This document shows, piece by piece, positions 892-23,425 of a stretch of 64,000 nt of DNA. The notes beneath the pieces were generated by a model. The model did not search any database and was not told where the DNA came from. It saw only the letters and a list, made by a program, of their open reading frames with translations. Each line of letters opens with the position of its first letter. Positions within the stretch are counted from its first letter, which is position 1. The stretch lies in the IMG/VR virus record IMGVR_UViG_3300020172_006270, positions 1-64,000 of that record; one strand, written 5' to 3'. The position numbers and the translations under genes were made by a program.

Positions 892-1542
892 ATGAAAATA
901 ATCATTCCTGTTAAATCAACATCAACTCGTGTTGAAAACAAAAACTTCAGGCCGTTCTATGGCGACCTTTCGTTGACAGAAATACTGTTGAAAAAACTTT
1001 TGTTTATGGGGTCAAACAACATATTCATAAGCTGTGATGATCCAGAAAAAGAATCACTAGCTCAGAAATACAATTGCAACTTTTCATTAAGAGATAAAAA
1101 GTATTGTGATAACGACACACCTTTGCCAGACGTAATCAGACAGGTGGTAAATCAAATTCCATATGACGAAGAAATAGCATGGTGTCAAGTGACCGATCCT
1201 ATGTTCAACGATCACGTCAAAGCGTTTGCTGAGTGGGAAATGAACAAGAAGAATCACGATAGCCTGTGCGTTGTTTATCCAATCAAAAAATATCTTTTGA
1301 ACACAGATCACATGCCAGTTAATTTTGGGTTTGGAAACTGGCATGTTAAGTCCCAAGACCTCAAAATGTTTTTTGATATGACATTTACTTTCTCAATACT
1401 AAAAAGAGAATCAATCGAAAGATGCGGATACCACATCGGCGCTAAGCCCTATTGGTTTAACGCATCTAACATGCACGTCGATATAGACACAATGGAAGAT
1501 TTTGAGTTGGCAAAATTCATATACGAAAGGAAGACAAAATGA
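892..1542 (+). CDS. NeuA/CMP-nonulosonate synthetase-like cytidylyltransferase
   Basis: IIPVKSTSTRVENKN, QVTDPM and VDIDTMEDF motifs. Confidence 0.8.
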   Translation: MKIIIPVKSTSTRVENKNFRPFYGDLSLTEILLKKLLFMGSNNIFISCDDPEKESLAQKYNCNFSLRDKKYCDNDTPLPDVIRQVVNQIPYDEEIAWCQVTDPMFNDHVKAFAEWEMNKKNHDSLCVVYPIKKYLLNTDHMPVNFGFGNWHVKSQDLKMFFDMTFTFSILKRESIERCGYHIGAKPYWFNASNMHVDIDTMEDFELAKFIYERKTK

Positions 1543-2363
1543 AGCCTTTGTTCAGATGGGTCATAGGAGATGTAAACCCGGAAGGCTTTTGCGTTTTGTC
1601 GCAAGCGATAACAAACGCTTTAAGATTGTACAAAAATGATTTTGATTTCTTGATTTGTTCTAATGCAGTTAATTCTACATGCAAAAAAAAACTACAAGAG
1701 ATTTCTCGAAAATTCGACATCGAGGTATACGATCAATCTTGGATTGATTTGCCCCTCGATGAATCGTTGATATTGAAATCATCTGACCGCATTAGACAAG
1801 GTACGTTTTGGAAACTGTGTCCCACTCGCATGAGATTAGAAAGTCACGAAATAATATGTGACAATGACATTGTTTTTGCAAATCCAATAAATTCGATTTT
1901 GGAGTTCCTAGAAAACAAGAACATTCTAATGATGAAAGAAGACGCTTTTTGCGTAGGCAAATACTTCAAGCTATTCAAAGAAAAAGAAAACTACAACTCT
2001 GGACTTTATGGCTTGCCTCCTGGCTATGACTTTGAAGATGACTTAAAAGCCACTTGGTCTGAATCCAGGTACAGCGAACTTCTATGGAGAGACGAACAAG
2101 GTCTTGTAACAGGAACTCTAAAAAAACACGAACACATCACAATAGAGGCCGATGAAATAGTTCACTTGTTTGATGGCGGCAGATGCTCTGCATATGAATT
2201 TGAATTCATTCAAGAAAATGAAACAAAAGCTCGTGTGATGAGAAATATGAAATTCAACGAATTCAAATTTTCTAGCACAGACAAAGGCTATCATTTTCTA
2301 GGAGTAAACAGAAGCGTTCACAAAAAGTGGATTGAGTATAAGACAAGCAGAATGCTCTTATGA
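1539..2363 (+). CDS. Putative GT-A (GT8-like) glycosyltransferase; paralogue of 5045..5734
   Basis: DND, NSGLYG, DEQG and HFxG motifs; MKPLFRW N-terminus shared with the paralogue. Confidence 0.6.
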   Translation: MKPLFRWVIGDVNPEGFCVLSQAITNALRLYKNDFDFLICSNAVNSTCKKKLQEISRKFDIEVYDQSWIDLPLDESLILKSSDRIRQGTFWKLCPTRMRLESHEIICDNDIVFANPINSILEFLENKNILMMKEDAFCVGKYFKLFKEKENYNSGLYGLPPGYDFEDDLKATWSESRYSELLWRDEQGLVTGTLKKHEHITIEADEIVHLFDGGRCSAYEFEFIQENETKARVMRNMKFNEFKFSSTDKGYHFLGVNRSVHKKWIEYKTSRMLL

Positions 2364-2980
2364 GATATGTAACCTTTACGTTTGATGACGGTCTAATCAA
2401 TACAGCAAGAATAGTGGATAAACTAAATATTCCAGCCACTTTTTACATTGTGCTAGGCTGGGTGTTAAATGAAACGAAGATAAACGATTCATTCAATGTC
2501 GAACTGGATCATGGAACCATTGAAGAGTGGAAAAGCCTAAAATTGGACATAGGGTGCCACACTTATGACCATGAAAAATATTTCGATGAATATTTCAGCC
2601 ACAAGAGATTCTCTCAATTATTCATTGGTCCCAAAAATTTGGCAACGCCATATGGATTGAAATATGATTCAAAACTGTACGACAGTTGCAAGATAGGATT
2701 TTACGGCAAGTGCTACAACACACTGACCAGCGAGGACGTAAAGCAAATACACTCAATAAACCCATGCTATGACCTAGACAAAGAAGCTCTCAAGTCAACA
2801 ATACTAAATTGCCCAGACCAACAATGGATAGTATTGACTTTTCACGGCATCAATGAAGGCTGGATGCCGATCAGCTATGAAGAATTGAAATTCTGGATTG
2901 AGTTTTTTACTCAAAACAACTTCACATTTTTGACGATGACAGAAGGAGTTAAAAGATCATGCAAAAAATACTTGCTGTGA
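2360..2980 (+). CDS. Polysaccharide deacetylase (CE4/NodB-like)
   Basis: TFTFDDG, ATFYI, GCHTYDH, PYG, LTFHG. Confidence 0.85.
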   Translation: MRYVTFTFDDGLINTARIVDKLNIPATFYIVLGWVLNETKINDSFNVELDHGTIEEWKSLKLDIGCHTYDHEKYFDEYFSHKRFSQLFIGPKNLATPYGLKYDSKLYDSCKIGFYGKCYNTLTSEDVKQIHSINPCYDLDKEALKSTILNCPDQQWIVLTFHGINEGWMPISYEELKFWIEFFTQNNFTFLTMTEGVKRSCKKYLL

Positions 2981-3774
2981 CGACATATAACCGACTATTG
3001 TTCTTGCAAGAAATGATTCATGGATTTTTTAGACACACAAAAAACATAAATGAATGGACCCTAATCATTGCCGATGATGGATCATCTGATGGCACAAAAG
3101 AGTTCATTGAAAAACTCGATTTTCCCAATGCCATAAAAATCTACAATAATAGGATTGGCATTTCCAACCAAACCAACTCAATCTTTTTAGAGTTGTCGAA
3201 ACTCAAAGAATTCGTCTGCTTCAAAGCAGATGACGATATGATGTTCATCAAAGATGGCTGGGACAGCCTATATTTGGAAGCAATGAATTCGAGTGGATTT
3301 CAACATTTATGCTTCGATCATTATCTGTTTAACCAATTCGGCGAGTTCAAGAAGAATGTGTTCTTGCATCCAATAATAAACAAATCTGTACTGGCTCGGA
3401 CTCCGACCATGTTCGCCAAAGGATGCTTCTATACCATAACCGATTCCATTTTGAAATCAGTTGGCTATATGGACTCAAACATTTTCTTTCATGGTCTTGA
3501 ACACGTTGATTATTCAATGCGATGCGCCCGTGCTGGATTTAATGACCCGAACCATATATTCGATGCCAAAGATTCAGATTTGTTTTTGAGCTATCGCTTC
3601 CCAATACTCGGCAGTGATCGACCTTGCTTGGAAAGAAGCACCTACAAAGCAAATGGCAATGGACAAACAGAAACAGAAATCAAAAAGACAACAATAATGA
3701 CACCCACAAGAATTTTTGTTGATTACAATCAAAACTCAAAAAGAATGAAAGACGCAATCAAAATTATGCTATAA
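2959..3774 (+). CDS. Glycosyltransferase family 2
   Basis: TTYNR, DDGSSDGT, DDD, EHVDYSMR. Confidence 0.88.
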   Translation: MQKILAVTTYNRLLFLQEMIHGFFRHTKNINEWTLIIADDGSSDGTKEFIEKLDFPNAIKIYNNRIGISNQTNSIFLELSKLKEFVCFKADDDMMFIKDGWDSLYLEAMNSSGFQHLCFDHYLFNQFGEFKKNVFLHPIINKSVLARTPTMFAKGCFYTITDSILKSVGYMDSNIFFHGLEHVDYSMRCARAGFNDPNHIFDAKDSDLFLSYRFPILGSDRPCLERSTYKANGNGQTETEIKKTTIMTPTRIFVDYNQNSKRMKDAIKIML

Positions 3775-4455
3775 CAAGGGCGATGAAAGGTCACTAATCT
3801 CAGGCAAAAAACCATCTCCCCTTCCATGTATGATTGCCAAATCTTGGTGATAGTGAAATTTCTTAGGTCGCCAATTAAACTCAGGAGGTAAAATTGCGAA
3901 CCTCAAATCACAATCCCATAGAGTTTTTCTAAAGGATGGCTGATCGTGTGGTTGCGGCTGGATTGAAAAGTTGACTTCCCACGACTTAAAAAAATCATGC
4001 GTATCACTTTTCCTGTAAAAGACAAGCCCGCAATTTAAGTCAGGAAAACACAGTGGCACATTGAATGTATCGCTCCATTTGGTGGTTCTGCATGAGTCGT
4101 GAGCGACAACTATGCTAAACTTGTCGAGCATCGAAAACATACAATCAATGTCTACCAAGGTTTTTATATCGCCATCCAAATACAGATTTTTTTCAAACCT
4201 CGTTTCCGACAGAATCTTAATTTTTGATTCAAAATAGACTCTACCCTCGCTCCAACCAGGAGCGGTATAACCATTAGGTATGAGATTTGGAATCTTGACT
4301 ATTTCATCAAATGCCGAAGACGTAAAGTCAACATCTGTGTACAGAACAAAATGAACATCAGTAGAATGCTTCCTGAAGTTCGCCGCAGAAATTGCCGCTT
4401 CGATGCAATACTTTTTGCTATCACAAGCAATGTAGTGAATACACTTTTCAATCAT
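3769..4455 (-). CDS. GT8-like nucleotide-diphospho-sugar transferase
   Basis: YLDGD, NCGLV, DQPSF, PPEFN, IIHG. Confidence 0.8.
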   Translation of the reverse strand: MIEKCIHYIACDSKKYCIEAAISAANFRKHSTDVHFVLYTDVDFTSSAFDEIVKIPNLIPNGYTAPGWSEGRVYFESKIKILSETRFEKNLYLDGDIKTLVDIDCMFSMLDKFSIVVAHDSCRTTKWSDTFNVPLCFPDLNCGLVFYRKSDTHDFFKSWEVNFSIQPQPHDQPSFRKTLWDCDLRFAILPPEFNWRPKKFHYHQDLAIIHGRGDGFLPEISDLSSPLL

Positions 4456-5048
4456 AATGCAATTATTTCAACCCCTTCGGATAATTTTTTCATTAAGTCT
4501 AATTGTTCATCCAAGAACATGCCATTCCCTTTTGTGGCCTCAAAATCAGAATGATATTGTGTGCCACCATCAATTCCTAAAGTGAAAAGTTGTTTCATTT
4601 TCAATGATTGAGCCACCTGTATAATTAAAACGCCAAAAGCATACTTGAACAATAATTGGTTTTTTTGAAAAAGGTTAGTAGAAAAACCATCTGGCGTAAT
4701 TATGTCATAGGAGAACAGTCTCTTTTCTTTATAGAGCCTGCCCATTTCACGGTCCTCTTGAACCAATGATGTTAAGTCCTTTACTGTTCTGCACTGATAA
4801 TTCATGAAAGCAGAACAAATGACGAACTGAGAATGTTTTGTTTGATCTTGAAACATTTCATAGTCTGTAAAATGACTTATCGGCGTGTTGAAAACAGCCG
4901 CAGCGTGATTGGAGCCTACCACGTTAAAAGCATTCAAGTATTCTGGCTTCCATCGACTCGATGATGGACCTTTGCCTACAGCTAGAAGCTGCTTATCTTT
5001 AAGCAGGGGCAACTCTTCGATGTGTTGAATGTTAACAGTCTTTATCAT
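4452..5048 (-). CDS. Maf/DUF115/sialyltransferase-fold-like protein
   Basis: VGKGPS...GSN...LGIDG pattern. Confidence 0.5.
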   Translation of the reverse strand: MIKTVNIQHIEELPLLKDKQLLAVGKGPSSSRWKPEYLNAFNVVGSNHAAAVFNTPISHFTDYEMFQDQTKHSQFVICSAFMNYQCRTVKDLTSLVQEDREMGRLYKEKRLFSYDIITPDGFSTNLFQKNQLLFKYAFGVLIIQVAQSLKMKQLFTLGIDGGTQYHSDFEATKGNGMFLDEQLDLMKKLSEGVEIIAL

Positions 5049-5734
5049 GACGAGGCCGCAAGATATTCATTCCAAAAAAAGCTATCACCTGAATTGAGGC
5101 CCACAAAATGTATGCCCGCCCTACCGAAACACAAATGTTCCGCAGCATCTTTACAAGCAATGTAAATATCAGAAATAGGGATGACCTTTACATTGCATTC
5201 TAACAATATCGAAGCAACTAAACCTTGTTCGTCAAAATGACCTTCCCAATTCCCTAACAACTTAGATTCAATCTTCTGACCAAAATCAAATTTGGGCGGC
5301 AAGCCAAATAATCCTGTGTTTAACTTTTGATTGCTTGCAATAGTGCTATCGTATTTTCCATATCTTCTTTTAAGCCCTTCTGTGCAGAATATCATGTCGT
5401 CAGAGTCAAAAAAACTATCAATTATTGGAAGTTGACCATAGACGATCAAATCATTGTCTATGAAAATTTCATGCGAGTCGCTCCTAATTCTAGGAGGATA
5501 TAACTTCCAAGAAGTCAAAAAAGGATCAACGGATATTGATCTCAAACAATCTCTCTGGTCTATAAAGTTTACGCCCTGCAATCCAATTGAATGAACATTG
5601 TCTCCACTGTGGCATACAAAATAATCGCATGATTCACCGTATCTTTTCTTCATTAAAGATATAGAGTAAATCAGGGATTGCAGTCCTTCCTTAGAAGAGT
5701 TGCGACCTATTGTCCATCTAAATAAAGGCTTCAT
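5045..5734 (-). CDS. Putative GT-A glycosyltransferase; paralogue of 1539..2363
   Basis: WKLYPPR, DNDL, NTGLFGLPP, DEQGLV, HFVG; start placed at MKPLFRW. Confidence 0.6.
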   Translation of the reverse strand: MKPLFRWTIGRNSSKEGLQSLIYSISLMKKRYGESCDYFVCHSGDNVHSIGLQGVNFIDQRDCLRSISVDPFLTSWKLYPPRIRSDSHEIFIDNDLIVYGQLPIIDSFFDSDDMIFCTEGLKRRYGKYDSTIASNQKLNTGLFGLPPKFDFGQKIESKLLGNWEGHFDEQGLVASILLECNVKVIPISDIYIACKDAAEHLCFGRAGIHFVGLNSGDSFFWNEYLAASS

Positions 5735-5788
5735 TGAACAACCCAATAAAAAGAAACCAAAACACTCGTTTATTCTTGATTCAAGTGA

Positions 5789-5796
5789 CTTAAATA
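5789..5796 (+). promoter_or_regulatory. Late-type promoter CTTAAATA
   Basis: TAAATA core recurs upstream of several genes; followed by GGAG RBS. Confidence 0.45.
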
Positions 5797-5818
5797 AGTA
5801 TCCAGGCGAGGAGAATAA

Positions 5819-6847
5819 TTGGTTGATTCAAAAATAAAAATAACCCATGTTAATGACCGCTACCTCAATAACGGAGGAGCAGAAATTTTCCTGCGAGAGC
5901 TATACCCACACCTGCGAGATGTTACCATCCGGCAGAGCATATGCGTTCGCCCTGATCGTATCGACCAAGATTTTGCCAGTACATTTCCCTTCCCGGTAAT
6001 CGCTGGAGGGAGGCAGGAAATCCAGCAGGCCATAGACGCCGACGATGTGATAATCTGTTGGGGAAATAACCAACTTAACAAACTGGTTGATCGAAAACCA
6101 AAAGTTTGCATTTACAATGCTTGCGCAGATGCACGTCAGCAATTGCTGGGATGCAATGAAATTGTTACCCATGTAATTGCATCAAACAGTCTGATATGCA
6201 AAACCGTTGCATTCGACTTCCCCCACACTCGAATTCTACCAGGGGTTAACCCTGACCGTCTAATCACTACAGAATCCAGGGATGAAACTCGCCGCCTCCT
6301 GAACTATACAAAAAATGATTTTGTAGTAGCAATGATCGCTCGAATTGACTTCGAGAAACAGCAAGACTGGCTAGTGCAGTGCCGCCGACAGCTACCTCCC
6401 CATGTTAAGGCGCTTTTTGTAGGGGATGGCCCTGACCGTGCCAAACTGGAAGAGGTCGCCGATGAAAATTGCCGTTTCGTAGGCCACCAGAAGGCAGTAG
6501 GCAATTGGTTTAATTGTATTGATGCCTACTGCCTACTCTCCTCCACAGAGGGTTGTCCGGCTGCTATGTTCGAGGCCATGTTTGCTAAAGTCCCAATTAT
6601 CGCTACTCCTGTAGGATCGGTGCCAGACCTTATCGAGCATGGAAAAAATGGAATGGTAGTCACCAACCACAAGGAACTCGTGGTTGCCATCAACACCCTT
6701 GCCGATAACCCAGAATACGGCAAGTCACTCGCTAATGAAGCCTATCAAACGGCAATTGCCAATGGCCATATAAAAGAAACAGCATCACAGTGGGAATCTT
6801 TAATCAAAAAACTAAAGAAAAGAGGAACATGGAAGTTGTACAAATAA
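5819..6847 (+). CDS. Glycosyltransferase family 4 (GT-B)
   Basis: GGAE, ARIDFEK, VGDGP, EGCPAAMFEAM, ATPVG. Confidence 0.9.
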   Translation: MVDSKIKITHVNDRYLNNGGAEIFLRELYPHLRDVTIRQSICVRPDRIDQDFASTFPFPVIAGGRQEIQQAIDADDVIICWGNNQLNKLVDRKPKVCIYNACADARQQLLGCNEIVTHVIASNSLICKTVAFDFPHTRILPGVNPDRLITTESRDETRRLLNYTKNDFVVAMIARIDFEKQQDWLVQCRRQLPPHVKALFVGDGPDRAKLEEVADENCRFVGHQKAVGNWFNCIDAYCLLSSTEGCPAAMFEAMFAKVPIIATPVGSVPDLIEHGKNGMVVTNHKELVVAINTLADNPEYGKSLANEAYQTAIANGHIKETASQWESLIKKLKKRGTWKLYK

Positions 6848-7587
6848 AAAACGAGCGTCATCTAGGCGACACTATGACCATATTGAATTTGTTGCACAGC
6901 AGGGCTATTGTGACAAATGAAAAATTCAAAATTTTTGGGCCTGATTTTATACCCATGTTGTTTGAGATATTTGAATACAAAGGATTAAGTTACGAAGGGC
7001 CTATGATTGAAGACTTAAATATGACCACCCCAATCATCAGCCTATTTCCAAGACTTACAAATGGCGTATTGGCACAAAACTTAGCGACTGTGACATTCTT
7101 GAACGGCGTCATGTTTAGACCCGATTCGCCGCCTGACTACAAACTACAAGAAGTCTGTTTGCCACAGTGCAAGCTGCCCTCTCAGGTAGCAGAAAATATC
7201 GCCTGTTTCCAATTCGACAGTCGCTCAATACATGAAGACAAGATGCCAATGACAAGCGAAGAAAGCATCATGAATATCAAAAAGTTCCAGCCCGAAGGCG
7301 TCAAGGTAGTAGGAATTGGAGGCCACGATACTAAGCCATATTTAGACTATGAATTCCAACTAGGTGACTTAGTTCAGTTGTGCAAGACATTAAAGAAATG
7401 CAATAAATTCATTGGCTCCGATAGCGGCATTTCTCACCTTGCAGGTACAGCACGAATAAGTGGAGACATCATCATCATCCACTCAAGACAACGACACTTC
7501 GATGAACTCAAGGTCTTTTATAATATCATGTACCCTACACTGCGATGCCATCACCGTTACCATAATAGCAAGAAACTTTTCTTATGA
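6829..7587 (+). CDS. GT9 (heptosyltransferase)-like protein
   Basis: HLGD near N-terminus; FIGSDSGISHLA; GAGGA RBS before ATG 6829. Confidence 0.65.
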   Translation: MEVVQIKNERHLGDTMTILNLLHSRAIVTNEKFKIFGPDFIPMLFEIFEYKGLSYEGPMIEDLNMTTPIISLFPRLTNGVLAQNLATVTFLNGVMFRPDSPPDYKLQEVCLPQCKLPSQVAENIACFQFDSRSIHEDKMPMTSEESIMNIKKFQPEGVKVVGIGGHDTKPYLDYEFQLGDLVQLCKTLKKCNKFIGSDSGISHLAGTARISGDIIIIHSRQRHFDELKVFYNIMYPTLRCHHRYHNSKKLFL

Positions 7588-8696
7588 TCCCATACTTAGT
7601 TCAGAGCAACCTATCCTCGGAACAACATAAAAACTGCTGCCAACGATTTGGCTACTCTGCGGAATGGGATCGCTCCGTCCGAGAGAATGTATGGAGACGC
7701 CACCAGGAGGATAAAAACAAAGAAGCATCAGGGTGGAAGATCGGCGATCACCGTCGCCGACTGGTTCACTTCAAAGACAAATATGGACTTCAAGGAAACG
7801 ATTTTTATCTTACCTCCACATACCTGTTCCTGTCACTGAAGTTGCCAAAAAAAGAACTCAGACTGTATCAGGAAAAAATATGTGACACTTGGCGACCGTC
7901 CAACACACTACAACTGAAAATGGTTGAAAGCAAAGTCCATATAGCGGACATACAGCATGGACGAGAAACGCCTCCTGATTATTCCAACCTAGACGTATGG
8001 TTGTATTCTGAACCTGTGTCTGACCGGGTATTAGACAAGCCTTGGAAAATTCTCAAAACGGGAATTAGAGAACGCCGCCCGGCAGGTCGCCCAACGACTA
8101 TAAACAGAGCCGATCTGGAACAATTCTTTCCGGCGCAAATTGAACTAGGCTGTGGGCCATCCATCGAAACTGGCATTCCACCACTGAACTACTTCCACAA
8201 CCTATTCTCACTGCAAAAAAACGGCAAGTTCGTATTCGCTGCGGACGACGATCAATTACTGGATGTTTTCAGCGACCCCGCTGAATGGTATTCCAGGGCG
8301 GTCGTCATGCACCGACAATGTTTACTGGCCGAGCCGTCGCCATTCTACCACAAGCTCAAATGCCTGCATGATGAGGGTCGAATCGTTGGACCGATATTGA
8401 ATAACAATTTTGACGGGCTACCGTTAAGTGTGGGGCTGGAAGAATTTTCACTTCGCCAGTACGACGAGGACGGCCTATATCCATCCATTAAATTCCACCC
8501 TAACGCCAAATCACTCCTGGTAATCGGATCACACGCTGACCGCCGCAATTGCCAAGCTCACGCCCGCAATCATGGACTCACGGTCGTCTATATTGACCCC
8601 GAAGGATATACAATCGGAGACAAATTCGCCCCGTACCCAGTCGAATCACCCCAAGACCAAGACTACATACTCCGCATCCCAGCATCGGAGTTATAA
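7584..8696 (+). CDS. Divergent sirtuin (SIR2-like) domain protein
   Basis: LGCGPSIETGIP, NNNFDGL, LLVIGS, VVYIDP. Confidence 0.6.
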   Translation: MIPYLVQSNLSSEQHKNCCQRFGYSAEWDRSVRENVWRRHQEDKNKEASGWKIGDHRRRLVHFKDKYGLQGNDFYLTSTYLFLSLKLPKKELRLYQEKICDTWRPSNTLQLKMVESKVHIADIQHGRETPPDYSNLDVWLYSEPVSDRVLDKPWKILKTGIRERRPAGRPTTINRADLEQFFPAQIELGCGPSIETGIPPLNYFHNLFSLQKNGKFVFAADDDQLLDVFSDPAEWYSRAVVMHRQCLLAEPSPFYHKLKCLHDEGRIVGPILNNNFDGLPLSVGLEEFSLRQYDEDGLYPSIKFHPNAKSLLVIGSHADRRNCQAHARNHGLTVVYIDPEGYTIGDKFAPYPVESPQDQDYILRIPASEL

Positions 8697-8697
8697 T

Positions 8698-9348
8698 ATG
8701 TACACACCTTGTTTCATCGGCGAAGACTGTGAGGCATCCTATCGGTGGAAACAATTGGGACAAACCCCAACTGGCCCGTTCCATAAAAAAGGTATTACTT
8801 TAGCTAGGCTTATGCGTCTGTTGCAAGATGACTTCTTGAATATATGCAACAAGAATAACCTACGAATAGTCGATCCCCTTAAAGGGTACAAAAATTCACT
8901 AGGAGGTTGTCTACGGGTTACGGAAGTAATCGACAACCAAATCGGCATGGAACTGTGGCACGACTTTCCTGCTCATCTCCAATTTGATGAACAATACAAC
9001 AGATTCATTGATGGAATGAGTAAAGAAATGGCTGAATTCAAGAATCTTGTCTGCTACGACCTACGACCCATATTATTCATACACAAAAAAACAGACCTTT
9101 TGTCAATTGCCGATAATAGCGATCTGAAGAATCAGTATCGAATATTGCTATCCCAACTGAAGTACCACCGAGCGGGCAGAAGATTTCTATTGGTCGCCCT
9201 GGGTCACAACGACCAGTTCCGAGAGGACTGGAAAATGGAAAACCTTATGACCCTTCAGATTCACACCCCTAAATTGTGGGGACATGACTTGCCAGAAGAA
9301 TCATGGCGCAAAGTCTACTCTCTGTGCAATCAAGCTCGTCTATTGTAG
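8698..9348 (+). CDS. DUF1796-like (papain-like) protein
   Basis: IGEDCEAS...GPF N-terminus and HDF motif. Confidence 0.5.
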   Translation: MYTPCFIGEDCEASYRWKQLGQTPTGPFHKKGITLARLMRLLQDDFLNICNKNNLRIVDPLKGYKNSLGGCLRVTEVIDNQIGMELWHDFPAHLQFDEQYNRFIDGMSKEMAEFKNLVCYDLRPILFIHKKTDLLSIADNSDLKNQYRILLSQLKYHRAGRRFLLVALGHNDQFREDWKMENLMTLQIHTPKLWGHDLPEESWRKVYSLCNQARLL

Positions 9349-9352
9349 CAAT

Positions 9353-9389
9353 AAAAAAGGGAACCAATACTATCGAGTAATTGATTCCC
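9353..9389 (-). terminator. Intrinsic terminator of the candidate minus-strand ncRNA
   Basis: GGGAAUCAAU/AUUGGUUCCC stem followed by U6 on the minus strand. Confidence 0.7.
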
Positions 9390-9560
9390 TTATCCTTGGT
9401 CGAGGGATTTCCTCTGTTTGAACTTCGCCCGATCAGTGCCTTAAAGCATCCTGATCCTGCATTGGCTCTGCCCACTCGTGACCTCAGATCAAACTTCCAT
9501 GCAGACAGTCGGAACTGAGTTGGTGTCACGGACTGAAGTTAGGGAGTCAGTCAAGGACTC
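9353..9560 (-). ncRNA. Candidate structured ncRNA (~210 nt), family unknown
   Basis: Intergenic; nested stems AACUUC/GAAGUU, GUCC/GGGC, GUGAC/GUCAC, CUCAG/CUGAG, UUCC/GGAA, GAUCAG/CUGAUC; TATAGATA upstream (9563-9570); terminator downstream. Confidence 0.6.
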
Positions 9561-9607: not shown

Positions 9608-10621
9608 ATGCTCAAGTTGGTGAAAAAGAAGGTGAAGAAGCCGGTATCGCTGCGAGATCACCAGGAAAGACGAAATAAAATACTCATCAAAAGACGCAGC
9701 GGCGGCTACGGCGACATCCTCATGCAAAGAATGCTATTTGAGGACTTTTCAAAGGCTTTTCCAGGCGCAGAAATCACATTTGCCTGCCCTGCAATGTACG
9801 TCGAAATGGCCAAAAATCACCCGTTCGCCAAAGCGATTGATCTTGGCTCCGTAAATGAGGATGAATATGGAGCCATATACGACCTATCAACCGCCTGTCG
9901 AGTTCACGAATCTCGCTTTGGAGAGAGAAATCAAGATCATAGAAGCGATATTTGGGCGGCACATTGCGGCATAGTTTTGAACAACCATAATATGATGCTG
10001 AAGCCAGACCCAATTGTGTTGGAGCAATGCCGAGAAGCATTCAAGCGATACAACAAGGAAGGAAAGCCAGCAGTATTGCTTGCTTCGACTTCCACTCCCG
10101 ATATGATAGGCACAGCCAAGAGCCTGACCTACAATCAAATCAGCGATGTAGTCAAAGCACTAAGAGATCAAGGCTGCTATGTGTTTACTATCCACACCGA
10201 CAAGCAAGTTGTGTACGACAACTTGGGAGTAGACCAAATATTCAGCATCCATCAACAAGCCTGGATTTCTATGGTCGAACTAGCTGATGCCGTCATCTCA
10301 GTAGATACTGCGACATTTCATATCGCAGGTGGGCTTCAAAAACCCTTAATTGGGATATTCGCTTTCACTGACGGCAAACTGTACGGCAAATACTACGATT
10401 TTGTCCTGGTTCAAAAACACAGAGACAATGGCGATTGGGACTGTGGCCCATGCTTCAACATGACGACTTGTCCGAAGTCAAAAGAAATTCAGAAGCCATG
10501 CCTGACAGAGCTATCTTCCTCCGACATTCTTCGGGGGTTCGCTGAGGCCGTAGAGAAGTGGCCGTCCTTAAAAAATAGTCTAAAAAATAAGCGAACCGAT
10601 CTGCTTGGTCATACATCATGA
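9608..10621 (+). CDS. GT9 ADP-heptose:LPS heptosyltransferase-like protein
   Basis: GGYGDIL, ISVDTATFHIAGG, C-terminal CGPC...C...C. Confidence 0.85.
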   Translation: MLKLVKKKVKKPVSLRDHQERRNKILIKRRSGGYGDILMQRMLFEDFSKAFPGAEITFACPAMYVEMAKNHPFAKAIDLGSVNEDEYGAIYDLSTACRVHESRFGERNQDHRSDIWAAHCGIVLNNHNMMLKPDPIVLEQCREAFKRYNKEGKPAVLLASTSTPDMIGTAKSLTYNQISDVVKALRDQGCYVFTIHTDKQVVYDNLGVDQIFSIHQQAWISMVELADAVISVDTATFHIAGGLQKPLIGIFAFTDGKLYGKYYDFVLVQKHRDNGDWDCGPCFNMTTCPKSKEIQKPCLTELSSSDILRGFAEAVEKWPSLKNSLKNKRTDLLGHTS

Positions 10622-17957: not shown

Positions 17958-19268
17958 CTAGGTGCGGAGTAACTTCAGATCATCAAGGTTGCGACCAGCA
18001 CGGCAAGTTACTCTGAGCCGTAAACCGGGGCATAAATCTGACTCGCCAGTAAGAACATCTCGGCCAAGTTTTGCTATGGCTTTCCAGTTCTCCTTCGTTG
18101 CATACACAGCGTAACCGTCGTGAACGGTGTAGGCGAGGTCGGTTTTATCTTTGAGTGCGAAATATAGGTGGGATAACTTTTCCAAACACACGACGGATGC
18201 CGGTGATTGAACTGCGAAGTTTCTGACAGAATATTCTTTGCCTTCCTCGAAGCTGGAGCGGCGTTTGCCAAAGATGTCTTTGGCATATCCGAGTTCTTGA
18301 AGCTGCTTCTGATAACCCTCGATGAAGGCCAAAGCAACCGGAAACAAAGCGTCAATGCGTTCTGAAATAATCTCTGCGACATCTAAGGCGACACCGCAGC
18401 GTTGGCTTAATGAATAAGCCGACTGTCCATATATAACCGGCAGAAAGAATTTTTTCGCCATTTCACGATCATTTTTTCCTTCGCATTTCTTGCCGGTAAT
18501 CTTCTCGTAAAGAGCCACATAAATATCCGGCTCCCGACAAAGCTCCTGCAATAACGGGTCTTTGCTCATCCAAGCCAGCATGAAGACTTCCATGCCCTTG
18601 TAGTCAAAGACCATGAACAGATCGCTCTCAGAGCGAGGCTTGAGAGCCTGCCGTGTTTCCGGCTTCATGGCGTGCGGAACATAACCCTGCTGATATTCTC
18701 CAGAACATTTCAGACGGCCATTTTCCTGGCCGTTGATTTCGTAATACGCATAGACCCTATTGCCGATTTGCGTATTGAGAATACCAACAGTTTCGAGATG
18801 AGGAATGACCGTGGTAATGAGCGGTATATGGACCTTGCGATAAACAGTCTCAACCTCTCTCCACATGCCAGTGGTGATGAGGTCTTTCAATCTGTTCATC
18901 GCCTCGATCAGTGTCTTCGGAACATTGAACTTGCGCCCGCAATAAGTTTCGATTATCTTCAAGTCAATAATTGCCCCATCGACGGGATACGTCTTGCCAG
19001 TCTTGGCCAGAATGAAACTTACGAAGTTCTTCCAATTCCAAGCGACAATCTTGTTGCTCTTTCCAAAAATACTCAACCGCAACATCGGCAGGAGTATCGG
19101 CAAAACTTCATCCGTGAGCATGACTTTAATTTGCCCACTCGAACTGAATATTTGCAATTCCGGTACGACTGCCCGATCCGTGAAGTCAAGCACTTCCGGC
19201 TGGCAACAGATAAACACATTTGGCCCTACCGTATCGGCGAGAGCCTTTGCCAGTTGTGAGTGGTCCAT
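17958..19268 (-). CDS. polA: Family A DNA polymerase, divergent
   Basis: NGRL, motif A DYKGME, motif B REMAKKFFLPVIYG, NFAVQS, motif C TVHDG. Confidence 0.9.
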   Translation of the reverse strand: MDHSQLAKALADTVGPNVFICCQPEVLDFTDRAVVPELQIFSSSGQIKVMLTDEVLPILLPMLRLSIFGKSNKIVAWNWKNFVSFILAKTGKTYPVDGAIIDLKIIETYCGRKFNVPKTLIEAMNRLKDLITTGMWREVETVYRKVHIPLITTVIPHLETVGILNTQIGNRVYAYYEINGQENGRLKCSGEYQQGYVPHAMKPETRQALKPRSESDLFMVFDYKGMEVFMLAWMSKDPLLQELCREPDIYVALYEKITGKKCEGKNDREMAKKFFLPVIYGQSAYSLSQRCGVALDVAEIISERIDALFPVALAFIEGYQKQLQELGYAKDIFGKRRSSFEEGKEYSVRNFAVQSPASVVCLEKLSHLYFALKDKTDLAYTVHDGYAVYATKENWKAIAKLGRDVLTGESDLCPGLRLRVTCRAGRNLDDLKLLRT

Positions 19269-19310
19269 GTGCCTCAATCATGCGGTTACTGCCAAGGATG
19301 TCGTTGTTGA

Positions 19311-19339: not shown

Positions 19340-19359
19340 GACTGTTCGTTGTCACTTTG

Positions 19360-19901: not shown

Positions 19902-19907
19902 GTCAAT

Positions 19908-20008: not shown

Positions 20009-20016
20009 CATAAATA
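20009..20016 (+). promoter_or_regulatory. Late-type promoter CATAAATA
   Basis: Recurrent TAAATA motif upstream of 20064. Confidence 0.45.
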
Positions 20017-20063
20017 CGGTAGACCCAGGTACGGGTATTTCTTTTTTACTATGGAAGGATTCC

Positions 20064-21350
20064 ATGAAAATAATTGTAATCGGAGCAGGATTCTCCGGCC
20101 TTGCTTGTGCATACGAGCTAATGACCGCTGGTCATACCGTTCAAGTTCTGGAAGCTCGCAACCGAGTTGGTGGCCGAGTATACAGCAAAGACGATTTCAT
20201 CTCTGGCATGAACGTCGAATTCGGTGGAGAGCTTATCGGCTCGAACCATTATTCCTTAATCGGCTACGCTCTTGAGTTTGGCCTCGAATTCTTGGAAGCC
20301 GAAGATAATGATGCTGAAACACCGATCATACTGAAGCAACAAAAGCTGTCGCAGGTAGAGTACGGAAATATCAAAACAGAAATATCCAAAATGCAAAATG
20401 CGTTGTCGGAAATGGCTGTTGATATTGATGCTAACCAACCTTGGTTGTCTCCACGAGCCGAATATCTGGATCAGATTTCGATGCGAGAATGGATTTACAC
20501 TCAAGATGCTTCGGCAATATCCAAATATCTTTTCGATATTCAGGTATCGAGTGACAATGGCGTAACCTCTGATAAGCAAAGTCTTTTGGGCAACTTAGTT
20601 TTAATTCGAGGCGGTGGCCTCGATAAATTCTGGAGTGATACCGAAAGCTACCGCACCAAGGGCGGCAACCAACAATTCGCTTTGAAGTTTGCTCAAAAAT
20701 TAGGCACTCGATTAACTTTGAATTGCCCGGTAACTCATATCATCACCGAGCCAAATGTTGTTGTTGTAGATGCTCATGGCGTAAATCACGAGGCCGATAT
20801 TGTCGTATTGGCAATTCCACCTTCACTGTGGTCTACCATTTATTTCACGCCGGAATTACCTGAAGATTTCATTCCTCAAATGGGAATGAATATCAAGCAT
20901 CTCTCGGCAGTTGAAAGCAAATATTGGATCAACAAAAACGTGTCGCAAAATGCCAAAGGCGACAGAAAGATTAACGAAACATGGAACGGCACAGAGGGCC
21001 AAGTCCAGGTTGATTATTCTGCCATCGTGATATTCAGTGGTGGCGAATCTGCAAAATCAGTAAATGCTGAGAAGGAATTGCTTGATGAGTTGGAGGAGTT
21101 TTATCCAAATATCAACCAGTCTATTGTTCGCAGTGAACTGGTTAATTGGATAACTGATCGCTGGACAAAGTGCGGATATTCTTTCCCGGCACCTGGAGAG
21201 ATCACAAAGCTCGGCCCAATTTTGAGACAGGGCATTGGGAACCTGCATTTTGCAGGTGAACATACATGCTATAAGTTCATTGGATACATGGAAGGCGCAG
21301 TCACATCTGGTTCGGACTTGGCTGCAAGAATCATCAAAGAATTAAAATAA
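20064..21350 (+). CDS. Flavin monoamine oxidase family protein
   Basis: GAGFSGL, EARNRVGGR, FAGEHT, GYMEGA. Confidence 0.92.
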   Translation: MKIIVIGAGFSGLACAYELMTAGHTVQVLEARNRVGGRVYSKDDFISGMNVEFGGELIGSNHYSLIGYALEFGLEFLEAEDNDAETPIILKQQKLSQVEYGNIKTEISKMQNALSEMAVDIDANQPWLSPRAEYLDQISMREWIYTQDASAISKYLFDIQVSSDNGVTSDKQSLLGNLVLIRGGGLDKFWSDTESYRTKGGNQQFALKFAQKLGTRLTLNCPVTHIITEPNVVVVDAHGVNHEADIVVLAIPPSLWSTIYFTPELPEDFIPQMGMNIKHLSAVESKYWINKNVSQNAKGDRKINETWNGTEGQVQVDYSAIVIFSGGESAKSVNAEKELLDELEEFYPNINQSIVRSELVNWITDRWTKCGYSFPAPGEITKLGPILRQGIGNLHFAGEHTCYKFIGYMEGAVTSGSDLAARIIKELK

Positions 21351-21623
21351 CGTGCCTTGAATTGGCGGTTTATCTTGAGGTAATTTTTCTTGAGGCGGTG
21401 GCTCTATTTGGGTCGCCGCCTTATTTTTTACCATTTCCTTAATCTTGTTCAAGGCAGTCCAAGGCTTAAAACGTGCCAATTTTTGAAGTTGACGATGGTA
21501 AAGAGCATCGGTCACGAAAACGTACCGGGTGCTGTCAATGTAGACGATTATTGTCCCATCTTTCCACCAACTGCCGAATCTAATGTTTTGCCCTTCGTTC
21601 AAGAGCCATTCTCTGAAGTTCAT
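21342..21623 (-). CDS. Hypothetical protein, possible internal head protein
   Basis: MNFREWLLNE N-terminus; TATATA 5 nt before ATG. Confidence 0.6.
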   Translation of the reverse strand: MNFREWLLNEGQNIRFGSWWKDGTIIVYIDSTRYVFVTDALYHRQLQKLARFKPWTALNKIKEMVKNKAATQIEPPPQEKLPQDKPPIQGTLF

Positions 21624-21667
21624 GGATTTATATATTGGGCTTGGCACCTATTCAGATACGAGGTAAA

Positions 21668-22435
21668 ATGGCTGAAAACAAAAAAGAACACTTATTCTCG
21701 GAGAGTGATGTGCGACTCGAAGCAATTATCGACTACGAAATGGATGAACTTGAAGGCAAAGCGTATAAATTGTGCTTGCTCTGGCTCGATAGAAGTCGTA
21801 AAGTATTCCCTGAATATCAGCACACGACAATGAAGAAGGGCGACCCTCGAAAGTCGCTGATATTCAAAGTGTGCTACAAGCTGGCTCGTGAGACACAGGG
21901 CGTACTCGAAGAAAAAGACTACCCTTTGTATATCCGGGCGCAGCTTGATGTTCTCCGACACATCAATACCGGCAAGGGCCATCCTCTCATCGACGCAAAT
22001 TGTTTGGTGGGAGATAAAGCCTGGAAGCGGTGGAAATTATGGAAAAGAAAATATGATTCCATCTCTGCGAAGCCGTCCGAAGTATCCCAGCCTGTTGGTC
22101 CCGGCGTTATCAAAGCTCTCGAAGGACTTGAGCGAACCAAAGAGTTCTTCGCCAAAACCTTTGGAGCAAGTCCAAGTCTTGAAAAGTACCGGGAGTCCTA
22201 CATCAACAACAACCTCTTTCGCTGGGTTAATTTCGGCAAAATCAGCCCGTACTATATTGCAATGTCGCCGCACATTGCGGCAGTTATGAAGCCGGAAGAT
22301 TATAAGAGAATGAACTTCGATCCCGATCTGTACAAGCCCTGCATTACAGATGATGTAATTCGTAAGTTCAGGGAAATGTTTCCGCACGAGTTCGATAATT
22401 TTATTTCTGATTTCTCCACTGAGACAATAGGATAA
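21668..22435 (+). CDS. Hypothetical protein
   Basis: Long ORF; GAGGT RBS before ATG 21668. Confidence 0.7.
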   Translation: MAENKKEHLFSESDVRLEAIIDYEMDELEGKAYKLCLLWLDRSRKVFPEYQHTTMKKGDPRKSLIFKVCYKLARETQGVLEEKDYPLYIRAQLDVLRHINTGKGHPLIDANCLVGDKAWKRWKLWKRKYDSISAKPSEVSQPVGPGVIKALEGLERTKEFFAKTFGASPSLEKYRESYINNNLFRWVNFGKISPYYIAMSPHIAAVMKPEDYKRMNFDPDLYKPCITDDVIRKFREMFPHEFDNFISDFSTETIG

Positions 22436-22439
22436 GCAG

Positions 22440-22712
22440 ATGCTTTCTCCAAAAGAGTTTAGAACACTCATGGCAGAACAGGGACGTGAATACACTGTCG
22501 ATCAAGCGTCTAAAATACTACGCAATTTAATTTCGTTGAATAAAAAACTCAAGAAACAACCTGATTTGAGTTTGATGAGCCAACAAGAAAAGCAAAGATC
22601 GAGAATGGAAGCCGCAGAGCATGGCATGGAGATTTCTCCCGACGAATTTAATCAACTGCATGATCTAATGGTTGATATTCAACAATCAGATTTTGAGGAT
22701 TACAATTCATGA
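22440..22712 (+). CDS. Hypothetical protein
   Basis: Operonic ORF. Confidence 0.6.
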   Translation: MLSPKEFRTLMAEQGREYTVDQASKILRNLISLNKKLKKQPDLSLMSQQEKQRSRMEAAEHGMEISPDEFNQLHDLMVDIQQSDFEDYNS

Positions 22713-23425
22713 ACTTAGTCTATCTTCCCCTTAGTAGAACAAACTGTGATTATGCTGATTTATGGTTTGGCAATAGTAAAAACTACGACATACTTGTGAA
22801 CAATTGGGGCGACCCTGGCTTTTTTCGGGATCGAAACCCTGAGTTATACTTTGAAATCAAAGAACATAAATTTCGCACATTGTTGAGTCTCTATGGACGT
22901 AATTTCAAGACGTTAAGCAAATACGACTATGTGATGTGTCCCGATCCTGATCTGAAAATTAAAGTTCAGGACATCAACAAATTGTTTGACATGGCAAAGC
23001 AATATGACTTAGATTTATGTCAACCATCTATCACGGGACACCTTAATCATCCGTGTTTAGCTCCAGTAGATAACAAAAACATTCTCATTAGGCATCTGAA
23101 CTTGATCGAGCCTATGTGTCCAATATTTTCTCGCAAAGCTATGCTCTCTTGCTTGTGGACGTTTTCTTTGTCATACTCTGCATGGGGCCTTGATTTTGTT
23201 TGGCCAGTTATTGTCAGTAATGAAAAGAGGTCTAATGTTGGCGTCATCAATGGTATAAGCATAGAGCATACACGACCATGTGTTTCAAAGGATATTGTGT
23301 TCCCAAATGGCAAAAAGGCATGGGATGAACACCAAGAGACACTTACTGCGTTTGGGCTTACAAACGCCGTTAAAATTTACCACACAACTTCTATGTTTTC
23401 TTCAAAATCAAATTTTATGTTGTGA
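22709..23425 (+). CDS. DUF707-like GT-A fold protein
   Basis: YDYVMCPDPD, LCQPS, IEPMCPIFS, WGLDFVW, HTRP. Confidence 0.75.
   Translation: MNLVYLPLSRTNCDYADLWFGNSKNYDILVNNWGDPGFFRDRNPELYFEIKEHKFRTLLSLYGRNFKTLSKYDYVMCPDPDLKIKVQDINKLFDMAKQYDLDLCQPSITGHLNHPCLAPVDNKNILIRHLNLIEPMCPIFSRKAMLSCLWTFSLSYSAWGLDFVWPVIVSNEKRSNVGVINGISIEHTRPCVSKDIVFPNGKKAWDEHQETLTAFGLTNAVKIYHTTSMFSSKSNFML

Follow-up and report, generated by a model that had tools for sequence, protein, structure and literature searches.

Why should unrelated enzymes encoded side by side in a phage genome end in nearly the same few residues? The question is raised by the window analysed here, a stretch of 64,000 nucleotides (positions 1 to 64,000) of the IMG/VR virus record IMGVR_UViG_3300020172_006270, which is a 223-kb fragment (46% complete) of an uncultured giant phage. 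An earlier note, based on the sequence alone, had claimed that glyco-enzymes of different folds at 1539-23425 share a basic-hydrophobic-Leu C-terminus, whereas the replication and translation genes mostly lack such ends. It inferred either a portable docking or targeting signal recruiting modifying enzymes to a scaffold, capsid or assembly site (PDZ/TPR-type C-terminal recognition) or a degron.

C-termini of the genes in the sugar-modification island

The observation was confirmed, and the pattern is wider than the note described. All eight C-termini that it listed are present: SRMLL (stop at 2363), KKYLL (2980), IKIML (3774), SSPLL (3769, minus strand), EIIAL (4452, minus strand), KKLFL (7587), QARLL (9348) and SNFML (23425). 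A ninth, at 7584-8696 and ending in ASEL, had been missed. The genes and the one overlap discussed below are as follows.

892-1542 (+), CMP-sugar cytidylyltransferase (CTP_transf_3, Pfam PF02348), the first gene of the conserved six-gene core, without the tail (ends RKTK)
1539-2363 (+), GT-A retaining-type glycosyltransferase of the "MKPLFRW...DxD" family, tail KTSRMLL (codons 2346-2360); the stop TGA overlaps the next ATG (ATGA)
2360-2980 (+), polysaccharide-deacetylase-like protein (PF01522), tail CKKYLL (2963-2977); its last 22 nt overlap the N-terminus of the GT2 (MQKILAVTTYN)
2959-3774 (+), GT2 family glycosyltransferase (PF00535), tail SKRMKDAIKIML (3757-3771 = IKIML); its last codon and stop (CTA TAA) are the reverse complement of the neighbour's TTA TAG
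3769-3774 (no strand), six-base convergent overlap CTATAA/TTATAG, in which the stop codon of each gene is the antisense of the other gene's last (Leu) codon
3769-4455 (-), GT8-like nucleotide-diphospho-sugar transferase (weak PF03407 match), tail SSPLL (3772-3786, minus strand), with a convergent 6-nt overlap with the GT2
4452-5048 (-), 198-aa protein with no family match, tail EIIAL (4455-4469, minus strand), ATGA overlap with the next gene
5045-5746 (-), paralogue of 1539-2363 without the tail (ends AASS), an exception inside the run
5819-6847 (+), GT4 (GT-B) glycosyltransferase (PF00534/PF13692) without the Leu tail, ending in the basic, amphipathic LIKKLKKRGTWKLYK
6790-7587 (+), GT9-like protein (weak PF01075 match; the true start is probably 6829), tail SKKLFL (7570-7584), ATGA overlap
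7584-8696 (+), 370-aa protein of unknown family, tail PASEL (8679-8693)
8698-9348 (+), DUF1796-like protein, tail NQARLL (9331-9345), 3' end free of any overlap; the start is taken as ATG 8698, as the longer ORF from 8572 overlaps the previous gene
22709-23425 (+), DUF707 protein (PF05212), tail SNFML (23408-23422), outside the main run

Based on our own gene calls for the whole record (291 genes of 60 aa or more), Leu is the terminal residue in 22 genes (7.6%), while Leu overall accounts for 8.2%. Eight of these 22 genes lie among the 10 consecutive genes at 1539-9348, and in 200,000 permutations no shuffle reached 8 in a run of 10 (p<5e-6). A terminal hydrophobic-Leu pair occurs in 7 of the 10, which was also never matched by a shuffle. 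The note had proposed testing the pattern [KR]x{0,2}[FMLYI]L-COOH genome-wide, and five of its six matches in the genome lie in this stretch. The claim that replication and other genes lack such ends holds, as 14 of 281 genes elsewhere end in Leu. The gene at 22709-23425 stands apart from the run, but its DUF707 homologue in L008, one of the phage islands found independently, also ends in LL.

The claim of different folds is partly right, since the set contains GT-A (three families), GT-B/GT9-like, a NodB-type deacetylase, DUF1796, DUF707 and one unknown, whereas the "basic" part holds for 5 of the 8 listed tails. Furthermore, not all glyco-enzymes of the genome carry the tail: the GT4 at 5819, the GT9 at 9608, the TPR-GT fusions and the GT4 at 174499 do not.

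The AF2 model of the 1539 protein (pLDDT 94) has a C-terminal helix at residues 262-273 and a last block at pLDDT 59, and its predicted fold resembles UGGT, XXYLT1, LARGE1 and glycogenin. The predicted fold of the GT2 is TarP/TarS/ppGalNAcT-like; in its model residues 247-271 are coil and the last 3 residues have pLDDT<50. The GT2 tail is a clade-specific, low-confidence extension of about 17 residues beyond the fold. One possible reading of these data is that the hydrophobic end packs onto the enzyme's own fold or a neighbouring subunit, and that compact phage genes simply stop right after the last buried residue. The tail of the 1539 protein, which continues a confident helix, and the strand-like KIKIIKL end of the 198-aa family are in line with it. 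However, we consider this reading unlikely, because the GT2 tail is an added coil beyond the fold end, non-island genes of the same compact phages do not end this way, and more than 15 unrelated families share the trait.

Tails in related phages and in bacterial loci

The tails are conserved in orthologues from six related phages, while the residues preceding them vary. The orthologues of 1539-2363 end in MLL, LIL, IFL, LFL and YFL, and where a 3-nt indel lies in the overlap they read ILYE or ILYG. Three close orthologues of this family extend the tail to ILYE or IFYE and one to ILYG, and a strict requirement for a terminal Leu carboxylate is therefore unlikely. The deacetylase-like KKYLL is present in 5 of 6 close relatives, while in the sixth, L007, the tail is KKY, where the overlapped GT2 codons changed. 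Of 14 homologues of the GT2 at 67% identity or more, 13 end in [KR]-hydrophobic-L, whereas its bacterial homologues end differently, with a long amphipathic basic helix at the same position. Orthologues of the GT8-like gene end in QLL, TFL, TLL, KFL and FLL, and those of the 198-aa protein in IIKL (four times) and IVKL. Relatives of the tail-less paralogue at 5045-5746 in other phages end in KIL, KFL, KYL, KML and ILL.

In the GT9-like family the tail is conserved down to 27-44% identity: of 86 full-length representatives at 50% identity or less, 36 end in L, 12 in I and 10 in F, with K-L-L, K-I-F, K-F-L and K-L-I as recurrent forms. The DUF707 homologues end in ESLL (L008), RQFI (L009, another independently found island) and KVII. 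For the DUF1796-like protein, a word search found no homologue other than the protein itself. None of the 6 orthologues of the CTP_transf_3 gene ends in a hydrophobic residue.

The pattern recurs in about 25 further low-GC glycan islands of huge phages, found independently (L008-L011, L027, L028 and 20 IMG/VR loci). The last two residues are both hydrophobic in 40-50% of island genes against 7% of other genes. Endings of the type [KR]x0-1-hydrophobic-hydrophobic or hydrophobic-[KR]-hydrophobic occur in 36% against 2.5%. At the family level, 16 of 46 island families end in Leu against 13 of 319 other families (p=6.5e-9), although the Leu content of island and other proteins is the same (8.8 vs 8.3%).

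The profile peaks at the carboxy-terminus. Family-weighted hydrophobic fractions are 0.59, 0.56 and 0.46 at positions 0, -1 and -2 (0.22 and 0.31 at positions 0 and -2 in other genes), the basic fraction is 0.35 at -3, and acidic residues are depleted over the last four positions. Basic residues at -1 occur in only 10% of island genes. The motif is thus roughly [KR]-hydrophobic-hydrophobic-[L>I>F]-COOH, often I-K-[ILMF]-[LFI]. Tails of unrelated enzymes within one phage are only marginally more alike than between phages (p=0.055).

The pattern is absent from 1019 genes of 80 bacterial GT2 (polysaccharide) loci (6% with both last residues hydrophobic), which include low-GC Bacteroidota, and from E. 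coli rfb and waa. Within the phage islands it is carried by GT-A and GT-B glycosyltransferases, a deacetylase-like enzyme and sulfotransferase-like enzymes. In contrast, nucleotide-sugar enzymes lack it: CTP_transf_3 (0/6), GLF (0/10 Leu) and single examples of UDP-glucose dehydrogenase, epimerase and hexapeptide transferase, and the same goes for most SAM methyltransferases.

Gene packing and the choice of leucine

Part of the preference for Leu, overlooked in the earlier note, is explained by overlapping genes. An ATGA overlap forces an NNA last codon, and the convergent overlap forces Leu on two genes. Six of the nine Leu ends in the window are touched by an overlap, namely three ATGA overlaps, the two partners of the convergent overlap and the 22-nt overlap. 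The convergent site reads TTATAA in five of the related phage loci (L001, L003, L005, L006 and L007), and the GT8-like orthologues always have TTA|TAA inside this palindrome. All 12 island genes with such a 6-nt overlap end in Leu, and these 12 forced ends are included in the pooled counts. ATGA overlaps raise Leu even outside islands (4/29 vs 7/211), terminal Leu codons are 76% NNA against 47% for internal ones, L007 lost the LL of the deacetylase when the overlapped codons changed, and the islands are about 5% lower in GC than their flanks.

These results could suggest that the tails are merely a by-product of genome packing and AT bias, inherited by orthologues and without any role of the protein end. 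However, the enrichment persists for genes with a free 3' end (11/40 vs 7/211, 27% vs 3%) and within the ATGA class (17/31 vs 4/29, 55% vs 14%). Positions -1 and -2, which the overlaps do not constrain, are also hydrophobic, and -3 is basic. All six Leu codons and all three stop codons occur, Ile and Phe ends rise too, the Leu content of the proteins is unchanged, and equally AT-rich flanking genes and low-GC bacterial loci show nothing. As the sole explanation, packing is therefore considered unlikely.

Possible roles of the tails and comparison with known systems

The interpretation given in the earlier note is partly supported. The clustering, the conservation, the recurrence in independent islands, the absence from bacterial homologues and loci, the flexible position on the GT2 and the lack of the tail on nucleotide-sugar enzymes were established here from sequences and models, and they support a selected, portable, protein-level feature. 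Its role, together with any partner binding, membrane association or effect on stability, is only inferred. Our best guess, held tentatively, is a common docking or localisation handle on the acceptor-acting enzymes of glycan islands in a broad group of uncultured huge T4-like phages. In this view, the free, flexible tail would insert into a hydrophobic groove of one phage-specific partner or site, so that the transferases gather where the glycan is built, and enzymes that only make soluble nucleotide-sugars would not need it. Leu (TTA/CTA) would be the easiest hydrophobic choice in such tightly packed islands. Against this view, no receptor was identified, the tails of unrelated enzymes within one phage are barely more alike than those of different phages, several glycosyltransferases of the same genome and most SAM methyltransferases lack the tail, and twelve of the pooled Leu ends are forced by the convergent overlap.

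In this view the site is probably a virion protein rather than a lipid carrier. Suggestive of a protein acceptor are the lack of membrane proteins in the islands and of Bac_transf and Wzy_C in the record, three TPR-glycosyltransferase fusions, Thr/Ser-rich Big_3 fibre-like proteins, and the fact that in some relatives the island abuts gp23-like head genes.

Alternatively, the tail, perhaps as the end of a short amphipathic helix, could be a peripheral anchor holding the transferases at the cytoplasmic face of the host membrane, where they would act on host undecaprenyl-linked glycans, as the C-terminal helices of bacterial enzymes such as KpsC, WecG and TagA hold their enzymes there. The bacterial homologues of the GT2, with long amphipathic basic helices at the same place, are in line with it. 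Basic residues just before 2-3 hydrophobic ones, with acidic residues excluded, are equally what a lipid-binding tail looks like, and soluble nucleotide-sugar enzymes lack the tail. There is weak 4-residue periodicity of hydrophobic positions at -5, -9 and -13, and the hydrophobic moment of the last 11 residues is slightly higher (0.33 vs 0.30, p=0.012), although the GT2 tail is modelled as coil and the 1539 tail as helix. Against this, bacterial polysaccharide loci, which face the same need, do not show the pattern, 2-3 hydrophobic residues next to a charged carboxylate make a weak anchor, W, F and Y are not favoured, the TPR-GT fusions point to protein acceptors, and no flippase, polymerase, ligase or initiating phosphoglycosyl transferase is encoded in the islands or the record. 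This reading is doubtful, but it remains the strongest of the alternatives.

A degron or timer, limiting the glycan enzymes to one phase of infection through a host or phage AAA+ protease (ClpXP, ClpAP or FtsH type), is possible but unlikely. Non-polar C-termini reportedly destabilise bacterial proteins, and one class of ClpX recognition signal is reported to consist of basic residues followed by hydrophobic ones at the C-terminus (Parsell and Sauer 1990; Flynn et al. 2003). The tails fit that description, and related phages (L005, L007) carry a ClpP gene a few kb from the island, although it may be a head-maturation protease. No ClpP was found in this record, which is about 46% complete, and there is no obvious reason why transferases but not precursor enzymes of the same pathway would be degraded. 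Like the ssrA -LAA tag and the ClpX C-motif 2 of MuA (-RRKKAI), the tails have a non-polar end preceded by basic residues, but their distribution follows enzyme role rather than timing, and a link to a protease is only inferred.

C-terminal signals read by a dedicated receptor, such as PTS1 (-SKL, Pex5 TPR) and PDZ class II ligands (hydrophobic-x-hydrophobic-COOH), are likewise portable, end in Leu or another hydrophobic residue, and are found on unrelated enzymes that must reach one place; the alternating I-K-I-x-L form suits strand-type binding. The hydrophobic residues at positions 0 and -2 agree with a PDZ-type ligand, although this definition is loose and the evidence weak, and the PDZ profiles PF13180 and PF17820 gave no match in the 223-kb record, which is only about 46% complete. 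The tails do not follow the PTS1 tripeptide [SAC]-[KRH]-[LM], as the basic peak is at -3 and not at -1, even though some fit (IIKL, RIKL) and one non-island gene, 141502-142350, ends in ASKL next to a TPR-GT9. The TPR proteins present are GT fusions, and a complex model of the TPR domains of the two TPR-GT9 fusions with the GT2 scored 0.30, below the mark of 0.34, which speaks neither for nor against binding.

The clamp-binding tails of T4-like phages and bacteria (gp43/gp33/gp55 tails; QLxLF/QLxLxL, QL[SD]LF) are also hydrophobic, often basic-flanked C-termini by which several unrelated proteins share one hub, and the islands often sit among replication genes. However, the conserved Gln is missing and not enriched upstream of the tail, the clamp profiles PF02916 and PF00712 gave no match in the record, and the enzymes look like glycan rather than DNA enzymes.

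Encapsulin cargo-loading and microcompartment encapsulation peptides are short C-terminal tags which, after a flexible linker, bring enzymes to a capsid-like protein shell. A flexible linker is seen in the GT2 model, but the sequence pattern appears to be different, nothing suggests that the enzymes are enclosed, and adjacency to gp23-like genes holds only in some relatives, whereas in this record the island lies far from the capsid gene.

Finally, the C-terminal membrane-association helices of bacterial glycan enzymes, such as the tethered amphipathic helix of KpsC (PMC10148158) and the C-terminal helices of WecG and TagA (PMC9804384), are basic-hydrophobic appendages on glycosyltransferases, attached by a flexible tether in KpsC and lacking in soluble precursor enzymes. 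WaaJ and WaaO belong to the same kind, and the bacterial homologues of the GT2 have such a helix at the position of its tail. The phage tails, which are absent from bacterial glycan loci, differ in that they are only 3-4 residues of motif, anchored on the very last residue and shared across many unrelated families.

Genomic context of the record and the C-terminal ends of its genes

The window is the first 64 kb of a single virus record of 223,268 bp, which IMG/VR classes as 'provirus' and for which CheckV gives a completeness of 46%. The record has no near relatives among 50,697 deposited phage genomes, and its DnaB-like helicase is only 35% identical to that of an uncultured 595-kb phage. 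Relatives recovered from metagenomes, several of which come from freshwater samples, carry gp23-like, gp32-like, DNA pol III alpha (with inteins) and ClpP genes; the record therefore represents an uncultured huge T4-like phage. The nearest cellular homologues of its GT2 are from Bacteroidota.

The earlier note described eight C-termini of unrelated glyco-enzymes as sharing a basic-hydrophobic-Leu tag, and this observation held, as all eight ends are present in the sequence. A ninth, that of the gene at 7584-8696, ends in ASEL. Genes were called with a self-trained codon-usage scorer, which gave 291 genes of 60 aa or more. Terminal Leu was found in 22 of 291 genes (7.6%), while Leu overall is 8.2%. 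Eight of the 22 are located in the ten consecutive genes at 1539-9348, and none of 200,000 label shuffles reached 8 in a window of 10. The same holds for hydrophobic-Leu ends (7 of 10). Moreover, five of the six genome-wide matches to the regular expression proposed in the note lie in this stretch.

Pfam and fold searches identified the genes as encoding a CMP-sugar cytidylyltransferase, a GT-A retaining-type transferase with a paralogue, a deacetylase-like protein, a GT2, a GT8-like transferase, a GT4, GT9-like proteins, DUF1796, DUF707 and methyltransferases. No homologue of the DUF1796-like protein was found by word search. A single-protein scan of IMG/VR found nothing. The family A DNA polymerase ORF (17958-19277) is only 439 aa long and matches just the C-terminal part of the polymerase domain (profile positions 100-380), and it may be a split or fragmented polymerase. 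Six tandem copies of the Thr/Pro-rich peptide TEPATT (positions 1-160, in an ORF open at the contig start and continuing into 163-879) lie directly upstream of, and in frame with, the Methyltransf_23 enzyme. As the contig starts inside the repeat, the true N-terminus is missing; the repeat could be a linker or an O-glycosylation tract.

Further genes of the record are as follows, the last three being outside the window:
51481-52125, Thr/Ser-rich repeat protein
52216-53901, Thr/Ser-rich repeat protein with a Big_3 hit and repeats such as TATPTGTYTVAGTV
54228-55592, TPR + GT9-like fusion
55573-56583, FkbM methyltransferase
112522-113508, GT2 + TPR fusion
142599-144305, 5xTPR + GT9-like fusion
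141502-142350, gene just downstream of the preceding fusion, ending in a perfect -SKL

The first four are adjacent, and the arrangement looks like a protein-glycosylation module with its fibre-like substrate.

Gene overlaps and the composition of the tails

The note overlooked several constraints acting at the DNA level. Three tails (stops at 2363, 4452 and 7587) end in TTA|TGA, with the ATG of the next gene overlapping the stop, so the last codon must be NNA. The GT2 and the convergent GT8-like gene overlap by six bases, CTATAA/TTATAG (3769-3774), where each stop is the antisense of the last codon of the other gene. As the reverse complement of TAA or TAG is always a Leu codon, Leu is forced on both genes. 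This palindromic overlap is conserved as TTATAA in five loci of related phages: L001 (3439-3444), L003 (12260-12265), L005 (12231-12236), L006 (5209-5214) and L007 (9772-9777). Only a synonymous Leu change paired with a TAA-to-TAG stop change is allowed at this site, and that is exactly the variant shown by the window. The deacetylase tail KKYLL lies over the conserved N-terminal strand of the GT2. All these overlaps are conserved in related phages, although in L007 the overlapped GT2 codons changed and the deacetylase ends in KKY. Of the terminal Leu codons, 76% are TTA/CTA, against 47% of internal Leu codons.

However, these constraints do not explain the pattern. The window was pooled with nine loci fetched around homologues. 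Island genes end in Leu in 55 of 121 cases and in any hydrophobic residue in 69%, whereas for other genes the values are 14 of 354 and 23%. When each protein family was counted once, the result was 16 of 46 against 13 of 319 (Fisher p=6.5e-9). Split by the state of the 3' end, the frequency of Leu in island and other genes was 11/40 vs 7/211 for free ends and 17/31 vs 4/29 for ATGA overlaps, and it was 12/12 for the forced 6-nt convergent overlaps. The family-weighted profile showed hydrophobic fractions of 0.59, 0.56 and 0.46 at positions 0, -1 and -2 and a basic fraction of 0.35 at -3, with acidic residues depleted over the last four positions. The profile returns to baseline by -3/-4, with weak bumps at -5, -9 and -13. 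The motif is therefore about [KR]-hydrophobic-hydrophobic-[L>I>F]-COOH, often I-K-[ILMF]-[LFI]. A comparison of tails for phage-specific 'dialects' gave p=0.055.

Other sources of the pattern were rejected. Composition was ruled out because the Leu content of island and other proteins is equal (8.8 vs 8.3%), and AT-rich flanks and low-GC bacterial loci show no effect. A T4-type late promoter (TATAAATA) lying over the stop codon was ruled out because the bases after the stops are not conserved. The view that the tails are merely 'trimmed ends' of compact genes was ruled out because the GT2 tail is an extension and non-island genes are not affected. No alternative genetic code or suppressor tRNA was found, and the ORF lengths fit their domains. 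The tRNA cluster of the record (75075-85385, outside the window) holds only 8 tRNA-Leu (all isoacceptor types), 4 tRNA-Ser, 2 tRNA-Phe and 1 tRNA-Tyr, that is, the tRNAs with a long variable arm plus Phe, and could be a replacement set against a host tRNA nuclease.

Conservation and distribution of the tails

The tails observed in homologues are listed by family.

Table. C-terminal tails in homologues of the island proteins
GT2: IML, KML, KLL, RML, KFL
GT8-like: PLL, QLL, TFL, TLL, KFL, FLL
198-aa protein: IAL, IKL, VKL
Deacetylase-like: KKYLL in 5 of 6 relatives
GT-A family of the gene at 1539-2363: MLL, LIL, IFL, LFL, YFL; ILYE or ILYG where a 3-nt indel in the overlap moves the stop

Of the 14 GT2 homologues at 67% identity or more, 13 end in [KR]-hydrophobic-L, and the one exception is a truncated fragment. 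The tier at 42-48% identity is mixed, while bacterial homologues end otherwise, several of them with long amphipathic basic helices. For the GT9-like protein, an exhaustive profile search returned 123 representatives at 50% mutual identity or less. Of the 86 full-length ones, 36 end in L, 12 in I and 10 in F (KLL, KIF, KFL, KLI), at 27-44% identity to the query.

Distant islands reached through other seeds showed the same ends on other enzyme families, including a sulfotransferase, a radical SAM enzyme, mannosyltransferases, GT4 and DUF707, while their flanks did not. A scan of IMG/VR with the profile of the GT-A family gave 25 loci, 20 of them non-redundant, from contigs of up to 527 kb. Runs of genes with hydrophobic ends coincide with the low-GC island and stop at its edge, and in one of these loci, L044, about 18 of 20 consecutive genes have such ends. 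With a conservative, homology-only definition of the island, both of the last two residues are hydrophobic in 40% of genes, against 18% in the rest of the loci.

The islands are about 5 GC-points lower than their flanks in every phage checked (positions 1-9400 versus the rest in this record, and loci L003, L005, L006, L007, L009 and L011 of other phages), across overall GC contents of 24-46%. A six-gene core (cytidylyltransferase, GT-A, deacetylase-like, GT2, GT8-like and 198-aa protein) keeps its order and overlaps while the surrounding genes are swapped. In several relatives (L006 9468-11912, L001 11082-11705 and several IMG/VR loci, L033 and L054) the island directly abuts a conserved 207-aa gene, a gp23-like capsid gene and a 250-aa gene, whereas in this record the gp23-like gene is far away, at 185296-186732. 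In the related phages, inteins and LAGLIDADG endonucleases interrupt DNA pol III alpha, a SpoVR-like gene and ThyX right next to the island (L005 3097-7310 and 15097-17136; L007 555-3291 and 12599-14638; L011 5890-7335), and L007 also carries an IS605 OrfB/TnpB (Cas12f-like) gene at 4368-5540.

As a bacterial control, 80 loci around GT2 homologues with a total of 1019 genes, including low-GC Bacteroidota loci, were analysed. Leu ends made up 6.6%, hydrophobic ends 22.6%, and both of the last two residues were hydrophobic in 6.4%. In the E. coli K-12 rfb and waa clusters, 3 of 27 genes end in Leu and none has the motif. The trait is therefore specific to phage islands, and it is not a general property of glycan gene clusters or of AT-rich DNA.

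Table. Hydrophobic C-terminal ends by family across 28 phage loci
GT-A family: 65 members, 85%
Sulfotransferase-like family: 16 members, 81%
GT2: 9 members, 100%
GT8-like: 8 members, 100%
198-aa protein: 6 members, 100%
Cytidylyltransferase (CTP_transf_3): 6 members, 0 of 6
UDP-galactopyranose mutase (GLF): 10 members, 0 of 10 end in Leu
Methyltransf_23: 24 members, 33% (4% Leu)

Single examples of UDP-glucose dehydrogenase, epimerase and hexapeptide transferase also lack the tail. Within this genome it is lacking in GT4 at 5819, GT9 at 9608, GT4 at 174499 and the three TPR-GT fusions. The 'MKPLFRW...DxD' GT-A family, represented in the window by 1539-2363 and 5045-5746, has no Pfam or PHROG model, although it is the commonest island gene, with 2-4 paralogues per island.

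Predicted structure and possible role of the tails

The AF2 model of the GT2 has a pLDDT of 93, with residues 247-271 predicted as coil and the last three residues below 50. The fold of distant homologues ends at 'RIFV', so the phage clade carries an extension of roughly 17 residues, YNxNxKKM...K-hydrophobic-L. In the model of the protein encoded at 1539-2363, the tail ends a C-terminal helix at 262-273, with the confidence falling to 59 in the last block.

The clustering of the tails, their conservation in homologues and their recurrence in phage but not bacterial glycan loci are shown by the analysis, whereas the mechanism, that is, any docking, localisation, lipid binding or effect on protein stability, is inferred. 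The interpretation offered in the earlier note, a portable docking or targeting signal or a degron, is thus supported only in part. A shared docking or localisation handle is favoured because the motif is anchored on the terminus, sits on a flexible extension, occurs on acceptor-acting enzymes, is specific to phages and recurs in many unrelated families. We lean towards a protein partner or site rather than the membrane, as bacterial glycan loci lack the pattern, the islands encode no membrane proteins, the record has no match to Bac_transf or Wzy_C, and the phage has three TPR-glycosyltransferase fusions and Thr/Ser-rich Big_3 fibre-like proteins. However, it is worth noting that this lean is modest: basic-hydrophobic tails also bind lipids, KpsC and WecG use C-terminal helices for membrane association, and the bacterial GT2 homologues have an amphipathic helix at the same spot. 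A degron, an oligomerisation element and a packing by-product also remain possible. No receptor was found, and searches of the record for ClpP, PDZ_2, PDZ_6, thymidylate synthase, gp45-type and beta clamps, HSP70 and DnaJ gave no match, although in a record only about 46% complete absence is weak evidence. The predicted complex of the TPR domains of 54228-55592 and 142599-144305 with the GT2 scored 0.30, the mark being 0.34, which speaks neither for nor against such binding.

Glycan islands are among the largest and least understood accessory regions of huge phages. If the tail is an address tag, it gives a cheap sequence rule separating enzymes that act on the final acceptor from precursor enzymes, points to an unknown hub or site where phage glycans are built, and offers a portable tag for recruiting proteins in infected cells. 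Even if the tail turns out to be a membrane anchor or a degron, the pattern is still informative, because more than 15 unrelated families converge on the same four-residue end, only in phages, which is a clean, testable case of convergent evolution of a short motif. It also shows how gene overlaps (ATGA, TTATAA) shape protein termini.

Full-text literature searches found no description of such a motif in phage glyco-enzymes, and a 2025 survey of large aquatic phages notes core glycosyltransferases but does not contain the term 'C-terminal' at all (PMC12619734). C-terminal targeting or anchoring motifs as such are already known. A more far-reaching reading, which is not excluded but which we consider unlikely, is that huge phages use a private C-terminal address code (about hydrophobic-K-hydrophobic-hydrophobic-COOH) that would assemble a multi-enzyme glycosylation factory on one phage hub, for example the head or fibre substrate, or the TPR arm of a priming TPR-glycosyltransferase. 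In this view the tail would provide a general rule for recognising which island enzymes act on the virion glycan, and it would be a prokaryotic-virus counterpart of PTS1 or of encapsulin targeting peptides.
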